The notes under the pieces are model-generated. The model saw only the letters and a program-made list of their open reading frames with translations, made no database searches and had not been told where the DNA came from. The position numbers and the translations under genes are program-made. Positions 13,198-37,300 of a stretch of 64,000 bases of DNA are shown in pieces. This stretch comes from Podarcis melisellensis (taxonomy: Eukaryota), in the NCBI GenBank assembly GCA_964234715.1, contig OZ174280.1; one strand, written 5' to 3'. How positions within the stretch are numbered: the first letter of the stretch is position 1; the number at the start of each line of letters is the position of its first letter.

Positions 13198-14808
13198 TAT
13201 ACCCCGCCCATCTGGCTGGGCCTCCCCAGCCACTCTGGGCAGCTTCCATAAAAACCAAAAATACAGTAAAATCACACGTTAAAAACTTCCCTGAACAGGG
13301 CTGCCTTAAGATGTCTTCTGAATGTCAGGTAGTTGTTTATCGCTTTGACATCTGCTGGAAGGGCTTTCCACAGGGTGGGTGCCACTACCAAGAAGGCCCT
13401 CTGCCTGGTTCCCTGTAGCTTTGCTTCTCGCAATGAGGGAACCGCCAGAAGGCCCTCGCCGCTGGACCTCAGCGTCCGGGCAGAATGATGGGGGTGGAGA
13501 TGCTCCTTCAGGTATACTGGACCGAGGCCGTTTAGGGCTTTAAACGTCAGCACCAACACTTTGAATTGTGCTCGGAAACATACTGGGAGCCAATGTAGGT
13601 CTTTCAAGACCGGTGTTATATGGTCTCGGCGGCCGCTCCCAGTCACCAGTCTAGCTGCCGCATTCTGGATTAGTTGTAGTTTCCGAGTCACCTTCAAAGG
13701 TAGCCCCACGTAGAGTGCATTGCAGTAGTCCAAGCGGGAGATAACTAGAGCATGCACGACTCTGGCAAGACAGTCCGTGGGCAGATAGGGTCTCAGCCTA
13801 CGTACCAGATGGAGCTGGTAAACAGCTGCCCTGGACACAGATTTGACCTGTGCCTCCATGGACAGCTGTGAGTCCAAAAGAAGAGACACAATCCCATGAG
13901 AAGAAACTTCCACAATCGGAGGGGGAGGGGAGCTACCACATAGAAGGCCCTGAAGCCATGTACAACCAAATCTCCATGGGAGGACAAAAAAAAAATCACA
14001 CATGGAAATGGCTCTTAATGTCTTCTCTTTGGGGTCTTCAACATTGAACAATCCTTTGTCTCTGCTCTCATGATTACAGTTCTTCTCCATGGGAACTGAA
14101 AGCATTCAAACTTAATAATACAAGTAGTATCACTGGATTCTATTTTGGACACAAATGTATTGGAGAGATAATTCAAAGTGCTCAGCAGGAGGGGAGCATG
14201 ATAGATTTCTGCTGTTTCCTGTGATTCAATTCCCCTATAGTAATAGGCATGGCCCACAGGTCACATCTAAGCAGGGAGCCTGGTATTTGAATGGGATACC
14301 CACTTCTCTGACTTGATTAAGGCATATGTGCACAAAGTGGGCCTATCTCTAATCTGACTTGATGACGACAGACGTTTTGGATAGACTTGAAAATAGAAGT
14401 GGGGCTGAGAGACAGAAATGACTGTAGACTAATAAGGTAGAAAAGCTGAAGTGTAATAGGACCAAACTAGATGGAATGGGCACAGAAGCCAGCTTCTTTT
14501 CAGTTGCCCAACCCATTCACATATAAAATAGATGACAGCCAGTCATCCTGGGCTTGGGGCCTGCTGGGGAAATGGTAGCAATTGGGCGAGCAAGGCAAAT
14601 CAGGACCTTGGTCAGTTCCCAGTGGGCCCTGATGGCTGAGCTTTGGAAGAAGACAGTTGAGGTGACGCTGGGACCCAGATGTAAATGACAGGATACTTTT
14701 TGAAATAGCTATCTTCTGCAAACAGAATTTTGTGTGTGAAATATCACATTCATTATATAATTTCTGGAGAATGCTGAAGGAAAAGCCCTTGCTTTTGACA
14801 CTTGAGGT

Positions 14809-14862
<54 letters not shown>

Positions 14863-17800
14863 AACTTTATTTCTGTGATTCTAAGTTGGTTTAAAGTGTT
14901 TTTTGATATTGTGTTTTAATGTTGCAACCCGCCCTGGGACCTTAAGATGAAGGGCAGGTAATGAATAAATAATCAATAAACAAATAAACAAATAAACAAA
15001 TGCTAATCACACCAAGTATAATTTATATTTATTTATTTTGTTAGTTACCTAACACAGCAGACTGTCTTTAGGTGCCTTGCAGTTATGTTTGGTCCTCAGC
15101 TATCAAGTTAGGACATCTTGTGACAGACAGATACCTTATTTTTAAAGAGCCCTCTTTCTTGCAGCTGATGGGAAAGACCATGATTCTGCAATGCAATCTT
15201 CATACAAATATAAATCTAGTAGTTACATATATAAGGAGATATAATGTAATGCAATATAATATAATATAATATAATATAATATAATATAATATAATATAAT
15301 ATAATATAATATAAGTTTGATTTTCTCTGCTATTTCAGAGGAGCAGCACATTTATGTTGCATTTGAGTTAATGGTTCACTGTTTGATTTGTTTTGCTTTC
15401 ATTTCTTCATTTCTCTTAGAAAATTGGCAACAGGTATGAAGTTTTAATCACCAGATAAGTAGAATGTATAATGTGTAAAGTTGGTCATGTTGTAATGAAT
15501 GATAATTCCTTTTCTCTCCATTTGAGTGTAGAAATGATGGGTATCCGTGCATTTTTCTCTTCTCGTATTTCCACTTCCATTTGCTAAAGAAAAACCTGTT
15601 TCCATAGAGAGTTTAGGTGCACAATCAGACCTCCATTTATTTAACTCCCATTGATTTCAAGGAGAAAGAGCTGAGAGCAGAAATCAATATGACACAAAGC
15701 ACCCAATTTTGGTTGGATACAAAATACAATCACATTTGGAAAGCCACTGTGCTCTTGCTGTTTTCTCTCTTCCCCATTATGCCTTTGCCTTATCTTAGTC
15801 GTAGCATTTTCTTTGCCTACTTGAATTTCTCATGCACATAAGTTGCCCCATGCTCTTGATAGTCTTCTTTGTTCATCCAAAAGCCACTGAAAGAGCTGAG
15901 TGAGGCCACCAAAGAGCCCCCAAGCCATGCTGCCTTGCCTCTTGCTGGGGAAGCCAGGATTTTTATAGGGTGCCCCCTGCCATGAAGCAAGGCATGCAGT
16001 TCCTTGCACATCCTCTCTGGAAAGCCAGGAAACAATGAGGAGCCTCCTGATAATACAACATTATGCATGAGCTCTCCTTGAAACTCAGCTGGAAACTTCT
16101 GCAAACTTTGGAAAGCCAAGATATGAAGTCCCGGGGAGTTCTGGCTCAACAGATGTGGCCTGAAGAGTGGCTCTGGGCAGCAAATACGTTCTTTGTCTAA
16201 CATTAACAAGTGCCCATCAGGGATCTGAACGCTCACAGGGTCCTGGCAAGCCTTGCCTTGAAGATCCCTTTCATAGTCCATGGACACATAGCAGTACTGT
16301 TTTGTAAGCCGGGCCACCATCTTTTTATCCAAGGACCCAAGAAGCTGTGGGTCATTGGAACTCTCCAGCAGCAGGGCATGCATGTGCTTGCAGAGAGCCC
16401 TCCCAGCCACGTCTAGTCGGTAGGTGCCTTCCATCCAGGTTTGCCCAGAGTGGATCGGAGTGACATGAGAAACCCCCGCCCCTGCCTCCACGCTCAGTCC
16501 AGTGACTCTACCACAGGCGCAGAGAGAGAGGAATCCTGTGTTGGCCACATGTAAAGCTGGGACACCAAAGCTCTCAAAAAACACTTCTGCCATCTTCTCT
16601 CTGTTTGTAGTAGGGCAGGAGGGAGAGTCACTCATCAGCATAGGATGGTCCTCAACAGGCACTCTCAATCCACAGTAGAAGAGATGGCTCCACAGATTCT
16701 CCATAGCCTCCCAGTCCACTATGATGCCATGCCTAACTGGATGGTCTGGGGATCTTCTGAAGCTGCCTTTGGCATGGACATTACAGGAGATAGATAGATG
16801 TTTATCCTGAGTCATCCCTGGATCGGTGGGAGGCAAGTATGTTGTCTTCATGGAAATCCTTGGCCTTTCCTCTCCTGCAAAGCCTGATCGAATGAAGGCA
16901 CTGCCATTGTCTACCACAATCGCAACTTTCCCCATAGTGTTGCACCTTTCCTCATGCCCTCTTCTGACTTTGCGGAAGTGGAATTATGTTGGCAGAATTG
17001 GAGAGAGATAAAAGCTCTTGTCACCCTGCCAAAAAACCAAAGCATAAGTAAAGAAGGAATGAGGCTGTGAATTCCCTTGGTAGTCAACTGCTGAAGTGAA
17101 AGTAGGATTCCTGTTGAGCATCAGAGTCAGGATATCTGAACAATCTCACAACACAATTGTTGCTTACAAGAGTAAGCCCCTTTGGGATCCCTTTTGGTTG
17201 CAGCACTATAGTCCATAGCAATCAGATAAAACATGGAGCTGCAATACACCAAGGTTTTGTGTTTCTTCATGGACTCAAAATAAATAACAAGTGACGTGAC
17301 CATCATGACCCCTATGGTGTATTGGTGTTTTTGTTAGTGCCCTGAACCGTTAATACTGCATAGACAAGACTGAACAGATGCTAAGGACTTACATAGTGCT
17401 TGTATGTGCACTCAGTAGTAGAAACACAACCTGGTTTGCATGTGACACTAAGCCATGGTTTATAAACCCTGATTTAACTTAAGCACAGTTAAGCCTGATT
17501 GTCCATACCTGCACCTCAGCTTAACTTTGGTTTATGTATTAACCAAGGTTTGCAGCTGGTTTATAAACCTTGGTTTATGTTAACCATGGCTTAGCTTAAT
17601 ATGGGATGCATTCCAAAGGACATGGTATTGTGTCGACTTCAGAATTCACAGTTTATTACAGAACCCCAAGTGTGCTTGCATAGGAAAGTGTTGTGGAAAT
17701 AAAGACATTGTTATAATAAGATACTGAGATAAAGCCTGTTTCCTGTTCATTGAATATTCATCCTGATATGTTTGTGTGGAGGTTAAATGTCACTAGCAAC

Positions 17801-20800
17801 TAGTGGCTATTATCCCATGTTTTCCAGTGCACTTTTCTTTTGTTTTTCCTTTTGGACTTTATGTCTTTTAGAAAGGTGATGGGGGAAATGTGCTAGAATG
17901 TATAGGATAAGAAACATTTTTTGTAGATGAACAGCCCTCTGAAAAGGCATAGCAGAGACATGTGTGCAGCTTGTAGCTGCCCAGTGTGCATTTCATGCTT
18001 CCCACAGGTCTCACAGCCTGACAGTCCCACTCAGATAGTAGGTACCAGCACTTTTCTTGGTTGCACTTATGGTGCATCTCCACTGGTTTTGCATGGAAAG
18101 TGGGTGCCTTCTTGGCAGGGGTGCCAACTTGCCCCACACATTGAGGGGGTGTGGTCATGTGACACTGCCCAGCATGTGCCAGGTAGGGGTGGGACATGCG
18201 GAGGACAATCTTTGTGCTTGCTAGTCCCAGCCTATGCCTGGCTCCTGGCCTCTCAGGTGGAGGCTGGGGCGAGCAAAGGCAAAGATTGCCCTCACTTGTC
18301 CCAGCCCCCATCTGGCTCCTGGGATCCTGGGCTGCCGGGCAGAGGCTGGGGTGCATGGGGGTGGCAGGGGGTGATGACCCCCTCAATATTGGGGGGTGCA
18401 GCCCCCAGCCGCCAAAATATTTGGGTAGCTGGAGCCCCTTGCATCCCATAAACCCAGCTTCCTTGCTTCTTGGGAGTTTTATTTAAAATAGCTGTAACTT
18501 GCGCTTTATCCTAAAATCTCATGGCAGGGAACATACATAAAACACCATCCACTTACCAAAATAATGAAGATAAAATAAACTAGAATGTCCTCATGTAGTG
18601 CCACAGCGGACAATCAATAATAACCCTTCCTGACATTGACCATTGTTGGTTGGTGGAATCGATTTCATACCTTGTCATATGTCTCCTCCTGTTTACCTCA
18701 TCTGAGGAGCCTCTGGATATTAGAAAACTTTGGCACGACAATGGGGAGGTCCTGAATGAGATGGCCAAAGAAAGGAAATGCCCAGCTTTGATGGGAATTC
18801 TTAGAACCTGCTGTGGTTTCCCTTCCTAACATGGATTTCCTTCTCTTGTGACTTCATTGGGTTCTGTTATGTGCAGTTCCATGGCAATGGAGCAGTGGGT
18901 GATCTGTGGCCCTCCAGGCGTTGCTGAGCCCCAGCTCCCATTATGCCCAGGCAACATCGCCCCATTGAAAAGCTTTTGAAGGGAGTGGGCTCTGCACTGG
19001 TGTCAAATCCAAGTAGCATTAGCTATGTTCATTCATTTGCATTGTGCCCCTCCTTTTCTTCACAAAGCTCAGAGCAATGATCATGAGGTTTCCAGGTGGT
19101 CTCTCATCCAGAGCCAAATCTGCTTAGCTTCATTTCTGAAACATCATCATGACCTCTCAGACCATTAAAATAAACAAAAACTCCAGATGATTAGAAATAT
19201 GTATAAAGCTAATAAATCCCAGCAGAATGATACCATAAAATGAAAATCAGTTATAAAAAATGGGGAAATAACTGGGCAATTTTACTATTATTGATTTTAA
19301 AATCTCCATCAGGAGCTAAAATACACGCTTCCGCAAGGAGGGCATTCCACAGACTGGGCTCGGTAATTGAAACGGGCCCTATTCTATTTACCACCCATCT
19401 AACCTCAAAGGGCAAAGGGACCCACAAAAGTGCCTCAAAAGAAGGCAGCATGGAGGATATTTATGTTTTGTGAAGATTACAGGCTTCTTACACATGACAT
19501 TTTTGCATATGTTGTCATTCAGCAACATACCTGTCACAACAATGTGTTTTGTTTTCTGCACTTATCATTTTGAAATCATTTCCTTTTTAAAAGAGCCACA
19601 TAGACAATATAAGAACGTAAGAAGAGCCTGCTGGCTCGGACCAATGGCCCATCTAGTTCCGTGTGCTGGTCTCACAGTGGCCAACCAGATGCCTTTGGGA
19701 TCCCTGCAAGCAGGACATAAATGAAATATCCATCTCTTGCTCCTTTTCCCTGCCAGCTCCAGCAAATGGCATACGGTGGCTTGCCACCTATGGTAGCAAA
19801 GGTAATATGTAACCATCATGAACAGCAGCCACTGATAGCCTTATCCACCATGAATTTGTCAAATACCCTTTTAGCTTCTTCATATAGGAAAAACGTGGGA
19901 TGATTTGCAAGACCATAAGGATTGCCTAGATGGGCAAAGGGTCCACCTAGTCCCCAACAAAGGCCAGCAAGATGCTTTGGGAAGATTTCTGGGTAGCATC
20001 CATAAATCGGTGGTACAGCAAGTGATTATCGTGCATAAGGCTCCATCCCTGGCAACTCCAGTTAAAGCCATCAAATAGCAGATGGTGGAAAAGACCTCTT
20101 CTGCCTGAAACCCTGGAGAGCCACCATCAGTCAGTAGACGGTACTAGACTAGAATGTCAAATAGTCTGACCTGCTATATGGCAAATTCCATATTTCAAGC
20201 TCACAGGCCAGACATAACAGGGGTGCCCTGTTGTTTGTCAACAGCATCCAGAAAATCAAATATATCCTGCCTCTAACCTTGGAAGTTCTGTTTGACCTAT
20301 CATGGCTCATATCCAGTAGCATAAGAATTCCCAAACTATAAAAGCCCATGGAAATGTGAATTGATGGTATCTGAGCTGAGTATGGATGTGGGTTTGGAGC
20401 ACCGTGCCCCTGTAGTCCCAAGCTACATACCAATTTTTTTCCAGAATACATCGTTATTTCTCAACGAATGCTGTAATGAGTTGACTGGCCCTTCAGAGGA
20501 TGAGAGGGAGGCCTCTTCTTAAAGTGCCTGCTAGGACTGGAGCTTAATCTTTGACATCCTCGCAGGTACTCTGTAAGCAGGTATTCTGTGTATATGATTC
20601 TCCCTCCAAAACACCCAATAAAGCCACAGGGTGTGTGGAAATGCCTTTCCACTTGCCACTGAATTCTCCTCAATTGTTCTGCTGTTTTCAGGCTTTGGAA
20701 CCCACAACAGCCTGATTCCCTCATGAGGCACCAACATGAAGGTACCCAAAGGAAGCAAAATGCTCATAGCTTATAGTTAAGGTGAATCGGGGCCTCTCCC

Positions 20801-23800
20801 TATTACACATCACATTCCGCAATGTTACAACTGTTAGTTCCCAATCAGCAATTGCTGGTGCAACATCTTACAGCTACTTCTCTTCTGGATTCTTTGGATG
20901 GTGTCTGCTGGGTTTTCTAGGAGGACCATACCTGTTTCCTGGCTGACAGCCTCAAGGAACCTGTGTAGCTTGCCTCTTACAATGATGGGCTTGATTGCCT
21001 GAATGATTCTAGCATGCTCATGCATTAATATTGTACAATGATAACTATCCAACCCGGGAACAGAACCTGTGTCCTTCCAGTTGTTGCTGGACTATAATTC
21101 TCATCACCCCTGACCATTGGCCATGCTGGTGACGCTGGCTGGGGCTGATGGTAGTCAGAATACAACATCTGGCAAACCCGAGGCTCCTCATCTCTGCCTT
21201 AACCCATTAAGTCTTACTTTAACCTCACATTGCCCTTGTGATCGGCACGATAGCAGGACGTGAGAACAGACCCTTGTTCTCGCCCCACTTTCAAGCACAC
21301 ACTAAAGGTGACCAGCCTTTTCGAGATGCTCAGCTTGGTTTATTGCCTTCCTGTGTCCTGGAGGTTTTTGTTTCCGTACCCTTGACCTGGCAATGTCTGC
21401 TGATCACAGTCCAGGTGGTCCTCTCATGCCTACTGGATGTATGGTGTACCAATTCTTGGTTTTATTTTTGGCAACCGTGGAGTCCCCGTCTGCGTTGAGC
21501 CCTGTCTTTTCAGCCTCAACCAAGAAAAACATTGTGAGAATCTTCCGCAGCTGGTGGTCTCCATCTCCTCCTCCTCGTCGGGCTGCTGAAGGAAACGGCA
21601 ATGAGGGGCTGCTGGGACTGTCTCCACGGTAGCCCCTTGGCTCTTGCCGGCCACAAAAATTTACCCTGCTCCCCAGGGGGAGAGTGAAGAGGGGGAGGAC
21701 TTTGGAGCCATGAGACAATTTTCCAAGAGGAGGAAGCAGCACTACCTTGACCTGTAAGCAAAACAGAATCTTCCTAATAAACTGAAACTTTCCTCCCTCA
21801 AGCACAAGAATTCTCCCTGATCCATTTCTGCAGCCTGAGTCAAGCACTTGATTGGACCTCATAGTCTCAGCTATTGCCTCCGGACAGATATTTAAACACT
21901 GTTGGATTTTTCTCATGTGATTCTTGCAGTGGCTGCCTTTGAATAGAAGAGTCTCTGGGTGCTGCAGCTGACCCAGAATGCAACAACTAGGTTGTTAGTG
22001 GGCACCAGAGGGACTGTGTTTGATCTGTCCTGCGGCATCCTCACTGAGTGCCCTTTTGTTTCCTGGCACAATTTAAAGTGTTGGTGATCAACCTTAAAGC
22101 CCTAAATGACCAGTGTACCTATGGGATTGCCACCTATGAGAAACAGATGGGCGGGACATAAATTATCATCACCATCATCTTTCCAACCTGCCCTTCTCTG
22201 GTAGTGGAGGCACAGTTGATGACAGCAAGATATTGGGTCTTCTAAGTGACTGCAGCAATATTGCACCTTGTGATATGAATTGTGATTTGCTAGCTAGCTG
22301 GTAAAGACATTTTTATTCTGGCACATTTTTGCCTGCTAAGTACTATGAAGGTCGTTTTTACCTGTTAACACTGCCATTGTTTTTTAAACAGATCTTTAAT
22401 GTTGCTATATATATATATAGTAGTATTGTAATTTTAAAGTTGCCCTGAGTGGGGCATGGGGCCTAGAAGGGTGGGGCAGATCTAGGGTAAGGGTGGGCAA
22501 GAGGTAGACTGGGATCTACTGGTAGATCAGTGGACGATTTGCTGTAATGTTGTGTTCAGTAGTACTGAAATCTAATGCACTAGTGCAGGGGTCCCCAACC
22601 TGCGGCCCATGGGCCAGAAGTGGCCCATGGAGGCCATTTAACCGGCCCACAAGCCACCCCCGAACGAGCCACCCACTGCGCTAAACTGGTGTGGCACGGG
22701 GACTCTCTTCCGCAGTTATGGAAATTGCTTCTGCCCATGCCCAGATGCCAGAAATCACATCTGCACATGTCTGCGGTACCAGAAACCGCTTCTGTGCATG
22801 CCCAGATGCCAAAGGTTGCTTCTGCGCAGGCCCAATTTCCGGTGTCTGGGCATGTGCAGAAGTGATTTCTGGCACTGCGGACATGCGCAGACGCGATTTC
22901 CGGCATCACGCTGTGCCGGTCTGGCCCATGGAGGATCTCTGCGGGAGTGATCTGGCCCATGCCTGGTAAGCCTTGCTGACCCCTGCACTAGTGGAACTGA
23001 GGAAGCTTAGTCTCAGCTTTTTATAGTGTTCCCTGTTAAGGTTGATTGCGTTCAAAATTTGGGAAAGAAGAGAGACTTGCAGTGAAATAGGGAATGTGGT
23101 GCTCCATGAAGAAATAGTTGCCGGAACAGCAAGCACAAAGCAGCAAAAGTGTATAACTGCAAAACTAAACTGCAAAACTAAATAAATAAATGAATAAAAC
23201 TAAATAAATTGTGTCATTACAGGAAACCCTGTGTGTGTGTGTAGTGCAGAAGAATCTCTAGGTCACACTAGCGGGAAATCCCTGTAATCTCTATAACCCA
23301 GAGTTAGCTAACCTTCATTAGGAGCAAAGATATGTTACCGTTCAAATCAGGCCATTGGCCTGATCTAGCAGGCTCTTCTTAATGTTAGCCACCTCCACAT
23401 CTTGTTTAAATACACCATTTAATGAAATGCTGTGTGAAGCAGGATTTCCTTTTGTCTGTTGCAAATCTCTCATCCTTCAACTTCATTGGTTGACCATTCC
23501 TTTGGATGGTCAATAGATGTCTCTTCTCGGGAGCTGACTGAGAAGAATTAGGTCCTTTCCACACTTACCAATTATCATAGCACTGTTGCTATTTGATCTG
23601 GCTTTCTTAAAGAGTTAATTTGTAGCTTGATTGCCTGCACTTTTGCTCACACGTCACAGTTATTAGAGAGTGACTTTGAGGGTTTGCTTTCCAAACTAAG
23701 GGTGAGTTGCGCCCTCATGGGAAAAGTGCCACTGCTGTAGTTCTATCCCTCAAGTACCCTTGTGTCCCTCAGCAAATGTCAGAGTTATGAGCATGTGCAC

Positions 23801-26800
23801 TGAGATAGCCGTTTCACAGCTTTTATCATTTTTATTTTAATGCCTGTTGTGCTGGAATATTGTGTGAGGATAGGAGATTAGAAGAGGATCTGCATGTCTG
23901 CTTGAACTATGGTGAACCTTGTCAATGTGATGGAATTTTGCCTGCAGCTAATAGTTGAAGGTATAGGCAGTGCATTGACTCAGTCCCATTGATTCCTTTT
24001 GCTATATACAGGGTGAGTCCTTTAAAAGAGGCCCCGTGGATACAGAGTACACATGTTCTATGGGGCCTCTTTTAAAAGACTCACCCTGCATATATCCCTC
24101 CTCTGAACAGAGCTTGCGTGCTGACAGCTCGCAGTGATCAGAGGGAAGGAAAACAGGCGTCTCTCAACCCTTCCACACAAAAACTGAGACAATGCTTACA
24201 CAATGCCACACAAATGCAAATATTGATGATCCATTCCAGATCTTTCACAAAAGTCAAAAATTTTTGTGGTACACAGGGGTGGGGGTAGTACATCATTTCA
24301 AAATACTAGCTGAGTAATAACGAAGTTGCTCAGCAATATGCCAGAAAAGAAACCCTGATGGAAAGAACAGTTATGCCACCATAAATGATAAGTGCAAAAA
24401 AGCACTCTCCTGATATCTGGAAATCTCTCCAATATTTTTGAAGATTACCATCACCACTTATAGAATGTGACACCACCAACCTACATGGAGGGGTATGTGT
24501 GAAGGATCCACAGTTATACATTTGAGACCAGAAACAAGGCTGCAGTGAAGTCTGAAAAGCCTGAAAAGGTTTTTGAAATGTCTTTCTTTGGTCTGAATGG
24601 ACAGCAAAGTAGGCCCCGGGTGGCTTTTTCGGGGGGAGAGCCTTCCACAGTTGGGATGGCAGTGCTGAGAATACTCACTCCCGGGTCTCTTTTCAGATGG
24701 TGGTGACACTGGGGTCCCTGGGTCTAGTTCACGGGTAGCCAAGATGATGCTCTCCAAGTGTTGGTGAGCAATTACTCCCATCGGTCCCAGGTAACATGGT
24801 CAAGGATGATGGGAATTGTAGTCCCGTAATATCTGGAGGGCAACACATTCGCTACCGCTAGTCTTGTCAGCATTATGGCATAATCTCTGCATGTAGAAAC
24901 AGCTTGGCAGGAGAGAAATCTTGTGTAGGGGGAGGACGTATATTATACACAGTTGTACAAGACTGCAGAAAGAGGGTGTAGGGGGCACCCTCAGCTTCTG
25001 GTGTTTTTGGGGGGTGAGGATATGGGGGAGCAACTAATCAACTGGTACTTACAGTGGACTTGTCTTTTTTCAAGCAAATTAAAATTCCCCTTTTGTCCTT
25101 GTCCTGGTCTGCAGACTTATCAGACTTATTTTTCTTTATTTTTCTGTGGGAGATGTTATTCCCCATCATGCCACCAGGGTAGCGGCTCTCCTCCTGGGGA
25201 AGCAGCTATGATAATGTTGCTACCAGCCCCTCCTGTGGTTGGGACTTTAACATCAGGTGCTATTGTGATGTCATCCAAGTTCATAGGGCAATCTTACAAT
25301 GGCTGAGAGATACACAGCTAAGCCCTTGCAGTCACCAGTGGCTGAGATCTTTCTTCTTCTTTTGCCCTTTGTTCTCTGTCACTGAGCCACAACAACCAGG
25401 AAGCAGGAATATATTTGAATTAAGCAGAACACATGGAGTTCTCCAGATGTTATTGAACTGCAACCCTATCAACCTCCATCAAGCATGGCCAGTGATAAGA
25501 GGTGATAGGAATTGTAGTCCAGTGTTTGGAGGGCACGGCATTGACTTCCTCTGGTTTAGAAGGTCTGTGTTAGGCCCTGCATCATTTCACATTGTGCTGG
25601 TTTTGACCCTGAAAGCCTTACACAACTTGAGCTCACCATACCTAAACAACTTCCTGTCTCCACCTGAACCTCTCTGGACCCTGAGATAATCATCTGCAGT
25701 CCTTTTCTGTGTGTCCCCTTTGAGAGAGAATTGGAGGGTGGCAAGAAGAGAATGGGAATTCTCTGTAGCATTCACCCCATTTATGGAAAGCTCTCTCCTA
25801 AGGAGGTCTGCGTGGCACCAACCTTGTCATTGTTTCAGTGACAGGCAATGGCATTTTTGTTTTCTCGGACATTTGGGAGGCACTAATGATAACAGTATTG
25901 TGCTGTTGAATCTGTTTTTTGTTCTTTATTTAGGTTTTTGCTGTATTTTTTTTTACTGGTTGTAAATCACTTTAGTGGGAAGTGATTTATAAATTGAATA
26001 AACCCAATCTGATGTGACCAGATCTGACCTACAGTTTTCTTGCTTTTCATCTTCTTTGTTGCTTTTTCTCCATTTATGAGGGAAAGGGTCTTCCAGATGT
26101 GGTTGGCACCAAAATGCCAGCCTGCATTTCTCACCCATTTAATCTGGATGTACCCTTTCCAGCAAAAATCGATGTTAAAAAAAAATTGTTAACAATCATC
26201 CAACATCTAAATGATCTCCTTGCAATATTAAGCACCTGTCTAGAAACATGCAAAGAGACAGATTCTCCACCCCACTGCATGATTGTTTCTCCAAGATAAT
26301 TTTGCAAAGCAGAGATAGCTGGAAAGTAGATTCATCATGTCTCCATGAAATGGAATTTTGAAAGAAGAAGGAATGCAGAAGAAAGGGGAAATTAGCATAT
26401 TTATGAAGCAAAAAGGAACAAGAGGGGGAAGCTCCTGTGGCCAGAGGATGTGCACTGGAGTTTGCCTTTTGCTAATCTGCGGTGTGCTGGCTCATAATGA
26501 ATCAAAAATCCCTCTTCCTCCCTTTCAATGGAAATGGAAGTGCATTGTTCAGAGCAACCAGGCAGATGCTTTCAGCTGATGGGGTATCTCACAGAAATTG
26601 CACTGGGGTGATACTTACCTTGGTAAAATGCCCCCCCTTTCCCCCCCTATCAGCTTATTGTGTGCAGTTCTGGCATCTTTCCTGTTCTTTAATTTATGAG
26701 CCCCATTTTGGTATCTAATTATTCACTGCCTCCTTACGTTACTCAGTAATTTATCTCCTACACAGAAATGGTTCTGTCTGCGTCGGACTTCATGATGGCT

Positions 26801-29800
26801 CCTGTAATAAAACTTCCCGCCACCAGCGAACAGCTGAACTGGGGATGGCTGACACAAACAGGACAATGTTTTAGAATTGGTTTCAGACAACAGTCTTGCT
26901 TTTGGTCAACCAATCGATTATAGAATTTTGTAGCACCTCAGTTAGGCATATAGTATTTTAGGAAATCTTCGCTACATTGTTTGCTTCAAGAGGTTTGCTG
27001 ACCTGTGCACACCTCTTAAAGCTGGGCTTTGACACTTGAGATGCATAGTTTAGGACTCAGCCTATTCTAGTGATTGTGAGGTAAAGGGCCCCCTGACCAT
27101 TAGGTCCAGTCGTGGCCGACTCTGGGGTTGTGGCACTCATCTCACTTTATTAGCCGAGGGAGCCGGTGTACAGCTTCTGACCAGCATGACTAAGCCGCTT
27201 CTGGCGAACTAGAGCAGTGCACAGAAATGCCGTTTACATTCCCACCGGAGTGGTACCTATTTATCTACTTGCACTTTGACATGCTTTCGAACTGCTACGT
27301 TGGCAGGAGCAGGGACCGAGCAACGGGAGCTCACCCCATCGCAGGGATTTGAACCACCGACGTTCTTATCAGCAAGTCCTAGGCTCTGTGATTTAACCCA
27401 CAGCGCCACCCACATCCCTCTAGTGATTGTATTTTGTTTTAAATTGTTCTGACCCACCCTAGGACCTAAGGGGAAAGGGTGGGCCATAAATTACTATTTT
27501 TATTAGTAGTAGAATCATAGAACTGTACAGTTGGAAGGGACCCCAACCCCCTGCAATGCAGAAATCTTTTTGCCGAATGTGGGGCTTGAACCCAAGACCC
27601 TGAGATTAAGAGTCTCATGCTCTACCAACTGAGTAGCGTTACATTTAATTTATTGAGGCCTTTAACCCAGAGATCACAAACCTGTGGCCCTCAAAATGAG
27701 GCTGAATTACAACTTCCATCAGACCCAGCCAGCCTGGCCAATGGCCAGGGATGGTGGAATGTCTTTCAGCAACATTTACAGTGGTACCTCGGGTTACATA
27801 CGCTTCAGGTTACATATGCTTCAGGTTACAGACTCCGCTAACCCAGAAATATTACCTCAGGTTAAGAACTTTGCTTCAGGATGAGAACAGAAATCGTGCT
27901 CCTGCAGCAGGAGGCCCCATTAGCTAAAGTGGTGCTTCAGGTTAAGAACAGTTTCAGGTTAAGTACGGACCTCCGGAACGAATTAAGTACTTAACCTGAG
28001 GTACCACTGTACAGGCTTCCATTGCATTAGGCCTTCCATCAGCCACAACAACTCTTATTCCCATTTTTACCACTGGAGGGCATTCTGCAACTCATTCCAC
28101 TCCAGCTGTTCATTAGAACAACATGTAACTAAGAACTTGAACTTGAGTTTGCTTATTTCCTCCTCCCTTCCAATCCATTTTCCTTTGGTGTCATGCATTT
28201 TTACATTGTAACCTCAGGGACAGGGGCTGTCTGGGTTTTTTTTTTTTTTAGTGATTTGTAAGCTATCCAAGGAATCCTTTTAGGTTGGAGAGCCGGGTAA
28301 AAAAAAAAAATCCCTAACAAAAATAAATAAATAGCTGGCACCACGACTGAGCAACAGACAAAGAAACAGGTTGAACCAAATATGTGTGGTTCAGGAAAAA
28401 AACAAAAAACTAATATATGTGTTTCAGAGGTCTAGTTTTGTCTGTGCAAGGAAATGGCATCATCGGGATATGTCAGGAAAGTCCAGTACTGAGAGCTGGT
28501 GTAGTATTGTGGGCAAGGAGGCTCATTGAGAAGCCAGGAACTTCCTGCTTCAAATCTTGCCTCTGCCATGAACTCATTGGGTGGGATCCTTGGGCAAGCC
28601 TCTCTCATATTCACACACACACACCCAACACACATCCTGCCACAATATGGGAATACTCAATGCTGTTTTTCTAGATAAAGAGGTGTTGGAACCTCCCTCG
28701 TTCTCTTAGAATGGCAATGGTGCCTGAGAGGTACCAGAACTGAGTTCTGGTGAGTTCCGGCTGAAAAAAGCTACTTTTACAGGTAGTCATGAAAGCTTTT
28801 GACTATTCTGAAAGGCTGCCGCCGCTGTTATCGCTAGTCTTCCTCTCCATCGGCTTTGTTGGACTGGCTGTAAAAAGCATGCAGCCCAGTCATTCTTCAG
28901 CTTCCATTTTGGGCTGGCAAATACAGCGCAAACTTCCACAAAGGGCTTGACTGCAATACAAGCAAGGAAGTGAGCTCAAGACTTGGCCAAGACTGCACTA
29001 TGGCAGGAGTGGAACTTCAGCCCAGCTCTCATGGATTAAAGACTTCTTCTTTAGCCACTGAGTCATTGCACTTGTCATCTGAGTGACCTTTCACAGAGGA
29101 CAGATCCCCTTAACATCCATCTAAACCGCCATAGGAATTAATCAACTAATTGCACTAATAATGTAATGCATTTGGGTCTTCTGGAGATGGATTGACTCTC
29201 TTGTTCAAAATCCACCCTGCGATTTATGGATACTTGCCACCACCAACATCTTACACAATGTACTTCCTTTTAGAGTTTCAGAGTCAGGTGGCAAATTTCA
29301 ATAAGCTAAGAAATGCAAAATAAATGTGGTGCTATATCTGTTCAGCAAGAATCGAAGGCTCATATTATATCCCCCACCATCCTAATAAAATGAGATATAA
29401 CCAACTTTAATCTCTCTCTTTTTTTGAGAAGTTAAAAGCCAGCAGCAGTTCCGTTTAGCTGGTTGCAGCCTCTGGGAGCTTGTGACTGGGACTTGAAAAG
29501 AGGATAAAATAAGAGAACAAGAAGAACATATGTTTAAAGAAGACTGTAAAATGTATATATGGGGAGAAACTGTGTACACTCGAAAACGTTGGCAGCATTA
29601 AGTTAAATTCAACAGTGTAAATAAGTCTTGATGGATGTAATAATGGAATACTGAATGGTTTAGTTTACATAAAATATGCAGAGATTTATGATATGCAAAA
29701 TGAACCATGGAAGGAGAAGAAAGGAAGTAATTGATATTTTAAGGATGTTTAAATGAATATTCTAAATTGTAGAATTTAGGACCAAGAGACATGGATAGCG

Positions 29801-32800
29801 AGGGAGCTGCTGCAGTGCAGTTTGTCTCCTTCACTGGAGGTTCTTAAATAAACGTTGGATGGCCATCTGTCATGGATGCTGTAGTTGAGATTCCTGCACT
29901 GTAGGGGGTTGGACTAGATGACCCTTGGGGTCCCTTCCAACTCTATGATTCTATGAAACAGCACTATGTTTATTTTGCCATTGCTTCTCTGCTTTAAGCA
30001 GGACTTGCACTGTCCAATTTATACCTGTTCGGCACAACCTATGTTCCAATAATCAAAGGATCCTACAGCTGCTGTTACATCTAAGTACACCTACAACTGG
30101 ATTAAAAGTATAGTCTCTTGACAGAAACTTTTCTGCCGCATGACTGAATCCACAATTATATAATCAGGTCAGGCCTAATAGATTTGTGCTCACAATAGCA
30201 ATTCATCTGGATGGATGAAGTAGCCATTTTATGTGGATCATCTTTATTGTACAAAAAATGAGGGAAACAGAAGCTTCACAATATTGCATTATTACCTGTG
30301 CTCTGGTAGCGTGGCTAATAAGATATATATATATCCCTTTGTTCCATTGTGTGTGAAAACAGAGGCTCTTCATTCGCAGTGTAGCTTGGTGGATAAAGCA
30401 CTTCTTATTTATTCATTTTCATTATCGTCGAACAAAGCCCACTGGTGTGTGTGTGTGTATGTGTGTGTGTGTGTGTAATCTTAAACTTAGTTGCAGCAGG
30501 GAAGGTAACACTTCAAAAGAAAGTAACAAACAAATGCGCCTGCTAATATTTCAAAGACCTATTGATTATATGCTCCTGGTTTAATTTTATGTGAGAGTGC
30601 TTTGAGCATTTTTTTATTTGTAATTATAGTCCCTCCCCCCAAAAAAAACCACAATAACAGTGCAGAGCTTCTGTTTGTGTGGCCCCCTTTCCTCATGTAT
30701 GGAAAGTAATACTTATCTCAATGCATTTCTTTCTCTTTGTTACTGAGGATATTGAAAATTCCCCTTTATATTTATGCATTTGGAATTCCTTGAATAAAAG
30801 ATGTTAGAGTGCAGCAGTGGCACGATACTGACTGGGTCTTCCCCTCAAGGCTCTGAACTTGCATCAGAGCTCAGGTTCCTTCTGCCGGGTGGTTTCCTTG
30901 GTGAACGCAGCTGGATGGTGGAAAGAAGAGTTTCCACGGGGCATTGAACAGAGCAAGGGCAATGGTAGCAATTCTGGGGAAAGATTGTTCAGAAGTATTT
31001 TGCTGTGTCCCCCAACCCCCTGCCCTCACTTCTCCAGGTATATGAGAGCTCCTCCAAAATGGAACAGTTTGTGACCCGCTTCTTACTTCGCGAGACGATG
31101 AACCAGCTGCAGTCCCTGCAGGTCTCACTGGAATGTGCTGCAGACACCATTGAAGAACAGGCTGGCCGAGAAAGGTACAAGAAAGCGCTGGGGGAGTGAG
31201 AAAGAGATGTAAAGTCACCAGTGGTGTAGCGTGGGGGTGCAGGGGGGGCCGGCCGCACCGGGCGCAACATCTGGGGGGGCCGCGCTCGCACTCGCAGCTC
31301 TCTGCCCCTACTAAAATCCACGGGTTAGGGGGCGCAAATTACTTGCCTTGCCCCGGGTGCTGATACTCCACACTACGCCACTGAAAGGCGCCACCAAAAT
31401 CTGAGGAGAAGGTTCTCTGGGCATGCCACTTCATGTGATAATGGTCTCAGAGCACTTCCTTCCTTCCTTCCTTCCTTCCTTCCTTCCTTCCTTCCTTCCT
31501 TCCTTCCTTCCTTCCTTCCTTCCTTCCTTCCTTCCTTCCTTTTCTCCTCGTCTCAAACCATGTTCACATGTGGAACTTTATTTTGCTACTGATATTTCAT
31601 CTGCCCACAAAGTCAATAGGGGCAGTGGCAGGACTGGAGTGGGATGTGCAGTCTACATCCAGCATCCCATTCTGGCCCAGGGTTTCTCCCAGTCCCCACC
31701 ATTTCTGGGAGCAGTTCCTGCATCTCCTGCCTGGTTGAATGCTGCAGTGCTGTTCTGGAAGTCAGAGGAGCTGTCACATAGACATTCAGTTGCAGAGACA
31801 GGAATAATACGTAATTGCCACCAGGGAGAAGCAACCCACAGGAACTGAGAGGAACCAATATTTCATTCTTATGAGATCTGATCTCCCAAAGCAGATACCA
31901 CTTTTCGTATCCTTGAAGTTTTCAGAATTACTAGTAAATAATAGAAAAAGCCCCCACAGATTTTAGACCAAGAGTGTGCTAAGGGTATGTCTCCTTTGTG
32001 CTCCTGCCATGAAGAATGAGGGGCCTTGTTTGCAGAAATTCACACAGAAGTGACTCTTAGCCATGCATTGCTGGCTATGATTCTCTTAAGAACTCATATA
32101 ACCCCTGTTTTAAAACGGCTGCTTTGGGTGGCAGGTTATTTTCAGGCCCAGTTTAAGGTTTAAACCCCTAAATTATTTAGTCCCCTAATATCTGAAAGAC
32201 TACCTCTTTCCCTACAGTCCTTCTTGGGTGTTAAGAACAACAAAGGAGGCCCTATTGGTTCCACCTCCTTCAGAGGTTTTTTTTTTGGGGGGGGTGTCCT
32301 GGGAGATGACATTCTCTATGGCAGCTTTGTGTGTCTGCCACCTTCATCACACAGTTTTTGGTGAATGCTGAAGATACATCTCTTTACCCTATCTATAATT
32401 TAACTGTTTTTAATATTGAATTTTAAATTGTTGCAACCTGAACTGGGACCTGATGGCAAAGGGCAGGTGATACATTGAAAAAAATAATAAGATTGTCATC
32501 ATCATCATCATCATCATCATATTTTGTGCTTTTCAGGAAGGATGTTACCAAATCAGAAGCTTTTGTTGGTCCACGCACTGCTAAAAGATGTGGCCGTAGA
32601 GCTCAGAAGAACATCTGTTTGTCTCCAACAGATCCTTATTCAGGGATGCTCACCACAGGTACTGGCAGGCTCCCCATCCCTCTTGTCAGACTTCACATTG
32701 AGGCTGGCTGCTTCACTGCCAGAAGCAGAGGGGTGGCTTCTGGAAAAATAGGGTATAAAAATGTCTGAATGCAGTAACAAAGTCTTGTACAAATTCCCTG

Positions 32801-32863
32801 GCCACCATCAACAATGGCCTGGTGCACACAGCCGTAGGTTTCTCATCACTTGAGCACTATTGA

Positions 32864-32909
<46 letters not shown>

Positions 32910-34314
32910 CACCTATCTAGCCACTCTGGGCTGCTTACAGCACATATAAAAACATAGTAAAACGTGTTTACATGTTTACTCCCACATAGAGTGCTCACAT
33001 CTAGCAGCAGAGCAGGACCATGCTTCTAGTTGCACCCCTCCCCACCCCACCGTTGCATCATCTTCCTATCACCAGACCTTCAGCATCGTGAGCACAGAGG
33101 TCTCACGCATGTAATAGAGGCCCCTGATGCAAATGAAACATGCATTAGGACTCCACGCATCGAGAACAGGACTTGAAGCACAGCCCCATTCCTGTTGCTA
33201 CATGTTAGTGTCTTCCATGTGAACGAACACATGAACAGGGCCTTGATTACTCAATGATCTGGCGACTTGGTGTGCACTGTGTTTTGAAAAAAGCATGGTC
33301 ATGAAAGGTTATATGGAAATTCTAGGTACAGAGTTGGATACACGGGGGCTTATTCATGCAAGTCGCCATTTGATGCTGATGTCAGCATGCGAGGGACGCA
33401 AATTATTTATTTACCTATTTTAATAATTTATACAGCACTTAATACTGCCGTTTCTAAGTGGTGTACACGAGGGATACAAGAGGTACACCAAAAGGTAGGC
33501 ACACTTAATGCCTTCATAAGAAGAAACACTGGGCCTTTCTTTCTAATGAATTGCTGCAAATCAGGGCCTAAGTAGACCTTAGACTGTACTACAGCACTAA
33601 GATCAGAAATAAGCCTCTGCTGCTGCCTTTAACTATCCTTTTACAGGCAGAGGCGAATCTCCGATCTTAGTGCTAATCTCCACAGCACTAGGACTGGAGA
33701 CAAGCCCCCTGCTTGCTCTTTGATAATAAAAAGCAGCAAGGATAATGGCTTATCTCTAACCTTAGCACTGTGCAGTCAGGTGACTGACAGGTAGGTGGCC
33801 ACACCCACTTATCAAAATAGCCCACGAGGCCAGGCTACTTCTAGGTCAGGTCTTCCAGCCTGGTCCTTTTTCCCACCCCACCCTACAAGGAACTGTCTCC
33901 AGCCCACATCTCCCAAGTAATGTCAAGTAAAAGAAACACCTGATGTGATATCATCACTTTCTGCATTCTCCACCCTTTCAAGGGTCGGGGAATGCTGGGT
34001 GTGACAATGTCACACCATGCAAGTGGCAACCACTCAGTCCATGTAACATCTACTTAGGCCCTGAGGCATCGTTTCAACAACAAGCCTGGAAGTAGCTTGA
34101 AAGCCCATTTCTGATCTGTGAGCCAACACAGGCCAGGGCTCTTCCATGTTACATTTTTCACCACAACACCAGCAGTGTAAGAAAGTACATTCACAAATGA
34201 AAACCTGTCAGAAGTGGTCGTGGCTATTTTCCAGGCAGAGGTACTGTCTGTGTTGCAGCACAGAGCACATTATTCTTTAAACATTTGCAACCACAAGGAA
34301 ATCATTATGGGGAG

Positions 34315-34382
<68 letters not shown>

Positions 34383-37300
34383 AAGAATGGAGTATTGCCT
34401 TCCTTTGTGGGCTGGAGTGGGCAATGCTACAGGGTCAAGGAGGAATAACAAGCAAATAGACCAGCCTTATTTGTGCTAAAATGAAGGAGTGAAGGTTTGC
34501 CATGCCATCTATCTGCCGACACTACAGAAGTACTCCCTATCCGCTGAACTACAGGCAGAAGGAGATTTTGCATGATTTCAGCTCCTCCTTCTCCCTTTTT
34601 CCCATTGCATCCAGGTGTTTGTGTGGAAACTGACAGCCAGTGGACAGCTGAGATCGACCAACTACAGCAGCTTATTGACAAACTGGAATGTAAGGTGGGC
34701 CAACAGATGGAACTGGTAGTAATAATACATGATGGAGATTCTGTGTAGAACAGAGATGCATTTTCCCAAGATCCTGGCTGCTTCTCAGGGCATTTGGATC
34801 TGGTCCAAAATACAACTTAGTTCGCTTTAATATCATCTCCTGTTGGGGCAGTTCATGTTCTCCCTAGACATATCTGACTGAAGTATCCATCCTTTGACCA
34901 GGGAATCTTTGAGCATAAAGCCCTATAATCAGGCATCACTTTCCCAGCCTCTCAAAGTCAACTTGTCTACTGACAAGGGTTTGGAAGATTTGATTTATTT
35001 TTATCCATTAGGCCCCACCTTTGTACCTTTTCTTAGTAGATTATGCTTTAAACCCATCTTTAAGCCAGTTTTAAACTGTCAGTTTTAAACTGTCACAATT
35101 ACCAGTCAAGGGACCCTAAGATATGTAATTATAGTAAGGAGGGTGGGGGAGAGTACAGAAGCCAAGTGTCAATAGAAATATTGCAACCTTTCTTTTAAGG
35201 TTTATTGCATTAACCAAAGCAACCGATACTAGCCAACCAAGTCTGAAAGGCTTATATATGGTGGGCCCCATTTTGTGACTCTGATGTGTTTCAAATATAT
35301 GTACATGCATTGCCTGCCTAATACATTATGAGTTGGAGATCCAGACATTGCTCCTGCTGGTAGAAGAGGGTAAGTGACTCCTGGCCACCCCCCTGTAACC
35401 CACAGCACCACCTCCCACACTGTTTCAGAGGCTTGGGTAAACCCTGGAGGACTGAGTGATTTGGCAAATGTTGCCTCCCTCCACCTCCCAGCAAAATCCT
35501 TCTGTTGAACCACAAAGGCTGAAAGGAGCCTTTCTGTCTGTGGAAGGTGTATTCTGGATCCAACCCAGAGCCTGTTCAATGTATAGCATCATATGTATTT
35601 CAAAACAAAGTGGCAGTAAAATCCTAAATAAAGTTCTGTCCTTAAACAAAATGGTTTTCTTGTGCCCTTTCTGGGATATTCCCAGGGCAAAGACAAAGGA
35701 ATAAAAGTGTTTATAGAATTGCTTATGGTGTCAGGAGTCCCTTGTCTCCAGTCATGTATAAAGAATGCTTTATACTTCAGAGGGAGGTGACGCATTCTCA
35801 CAGCTTATATTAAGGTCCATATTCTTTCTGCTGAAATTGAACCTAGCCAAAACCCTAGAATGAAACAGAGAACAAAGGAGCATCTCTAGAGGGTGTTTAC
35901 TGTGAAATATTCCAGTACAGTAGCTGTGTTAGCCTGTTGCAAAAAGAAAAAGAGGGGGGAAGGGGAAAGAAGGCCTTGTGGTATCTTAAAGACTAACAAA
36001 TTCATGATGGCATAAGCTCAGTGAAGTCAACTGTTGTCCACAAAAGCTTATGCCACACAATACATAAATGCATATATTAACATGTCAGAAAATTTTGTTC
36101 TTTCCACTTTCCAATCTTTCTGGGGAAGGACCATATCTTAGTAGCAGAACATCTGCTTTGCATGCAGAAGGTGCCAGGTGCAATCCCCAGCATCTACAGG
36201 TATGGCTGGGAATGTCTCCTGCCTGAAATCCCAGACAGCTGCTGCCAGTCAGTGTATACTCAGTGCATACTGAGTGAGATGGGCCAGTGATCTGATTCAG
36301 TATAAGGCAGGCTTCCTAGGCTCCTATGACATAGGTTCCTATATACCATTTGACTCACTTCCTCAGGTTTTTTACTGTTCCGCCTATGAAAGAAGATGGG
36401 ACTTCTGCTGATGAGATAATGAAATATCCTCCTCATTACCTTGGAGCTGATTCATATATGCACGCTCGTCATTTGCAGCTGAAAGTGTGAACTGCCTCTG
36501 TTGAAAATCATTGTGTCCGGAGATAGGAAAGTTCTGCCTATGGTGTGTGGTCTCTTAAGAGTGTTCCATACGTATGAAATACCATCTGATGTTACCCTGA
36601 TTCCTACACATTACACTCACCCGTAACACATTCTGTGAGACATCAAATAACCAACTGCTAAAACTCCCACTGGTTTATGTCTGGATACCAATAAAAATGG
36701 CTGGTTTTGATTCTGGGAAGAGCTCAAAAGCACAAAGGCTAGACCCTAAAGGGAGTGGGGTACCAATTCTTCTCATATATATTGCATCAGGCCAAATTAC
36801 CAGGTTTTTTGCTCTGACATACTTCTATGCAGTGCTTTTTTCTAAAAAAAATAATAATGTTTAGGGGTACTCTCATTTTGACTCAAGAAAATAACCATTT
36901 TATAGTCAAATAGGAAAAAAATGAATACAGTAATTGGACAAAAGTACAAAGATTCACAAAATGTTTAGGAGTATGCGTATCCCTGAGTACCCCCAGAAAG
37001 AAAGAAAGAAAGCAGCCAAGCCGTGGTTTGTAGCAACTGTGAATGCTGACAAAAAAGGCAGTCATTAAGTCAATTATACATTTCACACTTCCACATTCAT
37101 TGTTCTCCTTTTGCAATAATTGTGCATTTCTGTCTACTCAGAGTCCAAGGCTGGAACCTCTGAAAGATGATGTGGTCTGCAAAGGAAGAGATTCTTCTGT
37201 AAGTTTAATTGTGACCGCTCCGTTTATTTGATAATAAAAATGAGCAAATCCCTCAGCCAATGTGCTTGGGATACTATTAATATACTGGTGGAAACAAAGA

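Follow-up and report, generated by a model that had tools for sequence, protein, structure and literature searches.

A spliced two-exon gene antisense within NECAB3 of the lizard Podarcis melisellensis is very probably an ortholog of C20orf144/Bclt

Introduction

Does the mammalian gene C20orf144, also known as Bclt, have a counterpart in reptiles, and is that counterpart a genuine protein-coding gene? The question is raised by a locus on the minus strand of a 64,000-nucleotide stretch of DNA from the lizard Podarcis melisellensis (assembly GCA_964234715.1, contig OZ174280.1), which is referred to here as the window. A sequence-only reading had proposed that two exons at positions 21404-25169 form a hidden Bclt ortholog that dates to the amniote ancestor. 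The name Bclt stands for "putative Bcl-2-like protein of testis", and a literature search yielded no work on how Bclt evolved or what it does. The splicing of the lizard gene, the abundance of its RNA, and the selection acting on its reading frame are observed here. The position of the gene, the position of its intron, and its sequence indicate that this genuine protein-coding gene is, with high probability, the squamate ortholog of C20orf144/Bclt.

Gene structure and transcription

The gene is built of two coding exons separated by a single intron, with short untranslated regions (UTRs) on either side.

25053-25166, minus strand: coding exon 1, 114 nt, 38 codons (MGNNISH...KKDKST); covered by spliced contigs; kept in squamates, turtle, alligator, and marsupials
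21752-25052, minus strand: intron, 3301 nt, phase 0, GT..AG; exactly skipped by contigs in four runs
21404-21751, minus strand: coding exon 2, 348 nt, comprising 115 codons and TGA; contigs ~1,700-2,500 deep in runs X1 and X2
25167-25186, minus strand: shortest supported 5' UTR; transcript contigs extend to 25179-25186
21329-21403, minus strand: 3' UTR; AATAAA at 21344-21339, contig ends at 21329-21354

Reading of the minus strand bears out the structure that had been proposed, in which 114-nt and 348-nt exons are joined in phase 0 across a 3.3-kb intron and are followed by AATAAA. The donor gtaagt runs from position 25052, after exon 1, the acceptor ttgcttacag is placed ahead of position 21751, and the TGA stop codon of exon 2 occupies positions 21406-21404. 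The proposed start at MGN, with its ATG at 25166, also stands; however, the description has to be corrected for a second in-frame ATG, which in squamates directly precedes MGN (positions 25169-25167 in the window) and extends the N-terminus to MMGNN.

Transcripts were sought in four small public runs from one study of a related lizard that differs by ~2-3%. The tissues are coded, the runs carry no RNA record, and their RNA status was guessed; contigs were placed on positions 21200-25400 of the window. In all four runs, contigs join 21749|25051 (cut +2; CT..AC on the plus strand corresponds to GT..AG on the minus strand), with exactly 3301 bases left out, so that they meet precisely at the junction 25053->21751 that had been predicted from the sequence. 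One contig of 553 nt is composed of positions 21329-21749 and 25051-25182. Depth differs ~30-60-fold between samples of this one study: at the joint, two runs reach ~2,660 and ~2,700 and the remaining pair 44 and 89, and over the exons it is ~1,700-2,700 in runs X1 and X2 compared with 44-89 in runs X3 and X4. The contig depth of intron bins is near zero, save for two repeats. Exact removal of the intron at high depth is hard to explain other than as RNA. Because the intron is removed exactly and its depth is close to zero, the contigs represent transcripts, whose abundance is high in some samples and low in others. The 3' ends of the contigs reach 10-15 nt past AATAAA. The messenger RNA is ~560 nt long, has two exons, and encodes a protein of ~153 residues. 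When the differences of the related species are applied to the window sequence, both exons remain open, with 7 amino-acid changes.

Two additional features belong to the gene.

25187-25300, minus strand: conserved proximal promoter region, of predicted function, from a six-species alignment; TGACATCA, resembling a cAMP response element (CRE), at 25273-25266
22131-22133, minus strand: minor acceptor, used at ~1-2% of the main form (joint 25051|22131); stop codon after 9 codons

The promoter block with its CRE-like TGACATCA (25266-25273) is conserved between alligator and lizard; skink and alligator have variants that differ by one base. Contigs of low depth (~10-19) in runs X1 and X2 at window positions 25308-25400 start just upstream of the 5' end of the gene and run out of the stretch used for placement; they could be derived from pre-mRNA of the host gene or from a divergent transcript. 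Within the intron, positions 22580-22990 contain overlapping open reading frames (ORFs) on both strands that encode internally repetitive peptides, which suggests a tandem or interspersed repeat. Run X3 skips 135 bases in this segment (22745|22881).

Conservation and selection in squamates

A search with the exon-2 peptide identified a 154-residue "hypothetical predicted protein" of Podarcis lilfordi with 96% identity and the same junction, hypothetical proteins of cobra and rattlesnake (72%), a partial skink model (68%), and unnamed contig products. The squamate loci selected for comparison were those of P. lilfordi, skink (Lerista edwardsae), rattlesnake (Crotalus horridus), and cobra (Ophiophagus hannah). 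All four loci have the two exons, with a GT(A/G)AGT donor, a CAG acceptor, and a TGA stop codon, and every insertion or deletion among the squamate orthologs is a multiple of three. Frame-disrupting changes were looked for in these related lizards and snakes; the frame is kept, and the splice sites and stop codon are conserved. The pairwise ratio of nonsynonymous to synonymous substitution rates (dN/dS) is 0.19-0.37 for exon 1 and 0.16-0.32 for exon 2, where the closest pair gives 0.56 on only 8 differences; dS reaches 0.9. The sequence-only reading had suggested that dN/dS be measured across squamates; the values are about 0.2-0.3. The low dN/dS, together with the in-frame insertions and deletions, indicates that the frame is under purifying selection.

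These data bear on the explanation that the locus is transcribed and non-coding, or is a decaying pseudogene whose frame is open by chance. Such an explanation could draw on an in-frame stop codon in the alligator and a degraded copy in the emu (see below) and on the disorder predicted for the protein. However, the frame is intact in the window, in four other squamates, and in the turtle, and the low dN/dS at dS of up to 0.9 and the insertions and deletions in multiples of three are those of a coding sequence. A non-coding locus or a decaying pseudogene is therefore extremely improbable.

The predictions from P. lilfordi (P0001), Ophiophagus hannah (L345_06993, P0002), and Crotalus horridus (Chor_004055, P0003) represent the same gene as that in the window, with the same junction where both exons are modelled. 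Those from Lerista edwardsae (P0005) and Alligator mississippiensis (Y1Q_0004693, P0010) also represent this gene, both as partial models, and the cobra model L345_06993 carries a false C-terminal extension. Unlike the mammalian gene, none of the reptile predictions is named or tied to Bclt. The product of the window is absent from the protein collection listing, and the cluster of the P. lilfordi protein has a single member; therefore, most lizard annotations seem either to have missed the gene or to have left it without a name. Its description as "hidden" holds to this extent; however, "hypothetical protein" predictions exist in P. lilfordi, cobra, rattlesnake, skink, and alligator. The lizard gene is very probably a further member of the known, uncharacterised Bclt family.

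Position within NECAB3 and beside ACTL10

The neighbourhood of the gene in the window contains an actin-like gene on the same strand and exons of a host gene on the opposite strand.

15817-16935, minus strand: intronless ACTL10 ortholog, 372 residues; Pfam Actin 7.5e-84; 4.5 kb downstream, on the same strand
8751-8870, plus strand: NECAB host exon upstream of the nested pair; 82% amino-acid identity to the cobra locus, with an EF-hand gene called on that strand
30996-31175, plus strand: NECAB host exon downstream of the nested pair; 78% amino-acid identity to an alligator exon (locus L005, 1013-1174) in a called ABM-domain gene

The best named relatives of the window ACTL10, which range from viper through birds to marsupials, all bear the name "actin-like protein 10". 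In P. lilfordi, the two-exon gene lies antisense within a gene for a 360-residue EF-hand and ABM (NECAB) protein, and the locus is collinear with window positions 17276-35540. The cobra and alligator loci have the same antisense nesting, and there an intronless actin gene follows the two-exon gene closely, downstream and on its strand. Nesting antisense in an EF-hand and ABM gene, upstream of ACTL10, is found in lizard, cobra, alligator, turtle, emu, opossum, and koala, and the distance from the gene to ACTL10 is 4-7 kb, on the same strand, across the species that show the nest. The host gene is identified as NECAB3 because the hedgehog host gene abuts E2F1. A table of human copy-number variants lists NECAB3, C20orf144, C20orf134 (ACTL10), and E2F1 together at 20q11.22 (PMC3544904); the human neighbourhood is taken from this table and from general knowledge. 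The layout is identical to that of the marsupial Bclt gene, which agrees with the nested antisense position in NECAB3 that the sequence-only reading gave for the human gene. The synteny settles the identity of the gene as Bclt.

A caecilian actin-like gene lies outside NECAB and is therefore uninformative. Two other segments of the window were noted in or near the host gene. At positions 5813-5977 (plus strand), close to the 5' part of NECAB, a short open piece has 70% amino-acid identity with the cobra locus (on both strands) and a weak match to Pfam Adipogenin (E 0.034, below the cut-off). At positions 13272-14105 (minus strand), a 277-residue ORF looks, by eye, like a retroelement-derived repeat ORF; it lies in a NECAB intron, with ACTL10 on one side and the upstream exons on the other.

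Comparison with marsupial Bclt

Marsupials served as the mammalian reference: the loci of Gracilinanus agilis (opossum) and koala were reached via marsupial ACTL10 proteins. In the opossum, a gene for a 364-residue NECAB protein (EF-hand and ABM) occupies the opposite strand, and a gene for a 169-residue protein lies on the strand of ACTL10, at a distance of 5.7 kb upstream. The 169-residue product (locus L006, 3406-4303) carries the Pfam Bclt family, PF15318. The koala has a gene for a 164-residue protein in the corresponding slot, with no Pfam match on record. Koala exon 2 (locus L007) contains a stop codon 78 codons after the acceptor, where the opossum frame continues for a further 49 codons; the called 164-residue koala product must be modelled differently from the frame with this stop codon.

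The opossum and lizard proteins are alike in their MGNxxS start, in the lysine-rich stretch that follows it, and in being encoded by two coding exons. Over 42 residues, opossum exon 1 (MGNYNSRKKSKAPKQ...) has 57% identity with its alligator counterpart. The intron is located at the same aligned position in phase 0, between KRKSS|PKIVLLLPLDK in the opossum and between KKDKST| and an 11-residue segment in the lizard. Exon 2 is collinear with that of the opossum and shares with it K(V/I)VLLxPLxK, PxG, RGxGDG, KILxxxLL, and W..(I/L)H. By contrast, the marsupial protein is without GKLSHGSK and NWYTIHP and has a longer tail that is acidic and histidine-rich. Sauropsid profiles, in which the exons were kept apart, were scored on the marsupial exons and on composition-preserving shuffles (3000 each). 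The opossum scores were 28.5 bits for exon 1 and 12.2 bits for exon 2, neither of which was reached by any of the 3000 shuffles; the koala scores were 16.1 bits (0/3000) and 8.5 bits (1/3000). Because the shuffles fail to reach the real scores, lysine-rich composition does not explain the match.

Searches for the Bclt family

The gathering cut-off of PF15318 is 25 bits. The window exons were scanned separately, and the 96%-identical full-length protein of P. lilfordi stood in for the full-length product. Pfam Bclt is the sole family matched by the alligator protein (E 1.4e-4, 22.2 bits, residues 1-45 aligned to profile positions 1-45), by skink exon 1 (E 0.058, 13.7 bits), and by the cobra protein (E 0.25-0.32, 11.6 bits). 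A profile match to Bclt, which the sequence-only reading had anticipated, was thus obtained in part: the alligator, skink, and cobra sequences provide sole-family matches below the cut-off and the opossum provides a profile match, but the lizard alone has none. A feature search of the ESM Atlas ranks the Bclt cluster first twice, at 0.89 with 190 shared features for the lizard protein and at 0.85 with 176 for the rattlesnake protein. Word-index searches, one with exon 2 and one with a profile, returned sauropsid relatives only. When 1.84 billion proteins were searched exhaustively with the profile, the only additions were the alligator protein, which is partial (E 5.9e-20), and P0011, a repeat protein from a bacterium; the latter was rejected as a relative, since its 11 weak repeat matches are spurious.

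Several results weigh against the identification of the lizard gene as Bclt. Pfam Bclt matches neither the window exons, scanned apart, nor the full-length P. lilfordi protein, and the 25-bit cut-off of PF15318 was reached by no sauropsid ortholog scanned. The exhaustive profile search of 1.84 billion proteins returned no mammalian protein at E<=0.001. The identity of exon 2 to that of the opossum is only 25-31%, and the mammalian comparison covered marsupial proteins only.

The missing Pfam match of the lizard, the absence of mammals from the exhaustive search, and the low exon-2 identity to the opossum could be accounted for by a sauropsid-specific gene that merely occupies the slot of mammalian C20orf144 and whose N-terminal likeness is due to convergent lysine-rich composition. 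However, shuffled sequences never reach the real opossum scores with either exon. The strand, the neighbours, the two exons, and the intron position all match, and the motifs are collinear over the full length of the protein. Furthermore, Pfam Bclt is the sole match in three lineages, aligned from residue 1 of both the protein and the profile. A sauropsid-specific origin is therefore very improbable. The lizard gene is filed as a divergent ortholog that is outside the present reach of the PF15318 model, whose cut-off is operational.

Range and fate in amniotes

The painted turtle (Chrysemys picta, locus L008, 2212-2340 and 3232-3567) has both exons intact upstream of ACTL10, with no gene called there, and exon 2 is 53% identical between lizard and turtle. 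In the alligator, exon 2 is interrupted by an in-frame stop codon (locus L005, 11787-11789), homologous sequence continues in frame to 11981, and the annotated product has 84 residues. The stop codon could be due to truncation, early pseudogenisation, or an assembly error. The emu (Dromaius novaehollandiae, locus L010, 4798-4905 and 6005-6265) has a strongly diverged copy in the corresponding slot, with 34-47% identity to those of turtle and alligator; it is without the 13-residue core of exon 2, and the slot carries no gene call. In birds, the gene may be in decay. In the hedgehog (Erinaceus europaeus, locus L009, 1-10000), no Bclt-like exon was found within 10 kb upstream of ACTL10, with NECAB3 and E2F1 in place. 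The hedgehog result may reflect loss of the gene, a greater distance, or divergence, and nothing firm follows for eutherians.

Lizards, snakes, turtle, and marsupials share the slot, the two exons, and the intron position, which bears out the proposed origin in the amniote ancestor. The gene dates at least to that ancestor and is best preserved in squamates and turtles.

Protein and proposed mechanism

The AlphaFold2 prediction calculated with the family alignment has a predicted local distance difference test (pLDDT) score of 40.5 and contains three short strands and no helix; the pLDDT of the ESM Atlas model is 0.42. Structural neighbours in the Atlas were dismissed as meaningless, at template modelling (TM) scores <= 0.34. 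The protein is predicted to be largely disordered. No Bcl-2 family Pfam entry matched at E<=10 in the window exons or in the P. lilfordi, cobra, and alligator proteins, and neither Bcl-2 homology (BH) motifs nor a helical bundle were found. Because there is no Bcl-2 match and no predicted helix, the name "Bcl-2-like" is without support in the tests performed here. Bclt has only this historical name in common with the Bcl-2 family, and the lizard-type protein is without predicted helices.

Conservation is concentrated at the N-terminus and in short segments of exon 2. Three residues, Met1, Gly2, and Ser6, do not vary among eight amniotes, and a stretch rich in Lys and Arg comes after them. The conserved motifs of exon 2 are one 13-residue core, one segment led by RRGx, and NWYTIHP. 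The Met-Gly-x-x-x-Ser start with the Lys/Arg run is what we take to be an N-myristoyltransferase motif with a polybasic patch. Gly2, Ser6, and the Lys/Arg run are common to Bclt and to N-termini of the Src/MARCKS type, a comparison of how the proteins may work that claims no homology. By this analogy, N-myristoylation and the polybasic patch could hold the protein on membranes, and the short conserved segments of exon 2 may dock partners. The protein probably acts in male germ cells, by analogy with the human gene. Human C20orf144 is included in an expression signature of testicular germ cell tumour (TGCT) (PMC10298883). We give this membrane-anchor mechanism an even chance of being correct.

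Squamate Bclt differs from the Src/MARCKS type in its extra upstream methionine. If translation of the squamate ortholog begins at the upstream ATG, the MMG start leaves Gly2 unexposed and precludes myristoylation, which counts against membrane anchoring; the product would then be a soluble, basic, disordered protein. The sequence ATGATGG is kept in all four squamate lineages examined (lizards, skink, and snakes), and the first ATG has G at position -3. Alligator, turtle, and marsupials have a single ATG; the additional one is therefore specific to squamates. However, the context of the second ATG is stronger, with A at -3 and G at +4, and the Gly2 and Ser6 that follow it are invariant across amniotes, including squamates. 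Because these two residues are invariant even in squamates, selection on the myristoylation signal is suggested. Translation from the upstream ATG into a non-myristoylated protein is a possible alternative, which we consider less likely than membrane anchoring.

Discussion

The explanation that we favour as a whole is that the squamate gene and its place, antisense in NECAB3 and head-to-tail with ACTL10, both come down from the amniote ancestor, and we regard it as likely. A more speculative extension, which we put forward only tentatively, is that Bclt survives in its ancestral form in sauropsids. The exon-2 module (13-residue core...FFLVE...NWYTIHP) would then be strongly constrained from lizards to turtles, largely eroded in mammals, and in the process of being lost in birds and the alligator, and the nest of NECAB3, Bclt, and ACTL10 might have been kept for >300 million years by shared germ-line regulation.

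The case illustrates how nested two-exon genes that are small and evolve fast can be left unnamed, or go uncalled, in the annotations of reptiles and birds. For Bclt, a simple annotation rule is to look antisense in NECAB3, ~5 kb upstream of ACTL10. The human protein C20orf144/Bclt is uncharacterised, and its lizard, snake, and turtle orthologs date it to the amniote ancestor. The orthologs mark the residues that are truly constrained, which are the lipidation-type start and three short motifs of exon 2. If sauropsids do have the ancestral form, reptiles would be the better system for finding the role of the orphan Bclt protein.

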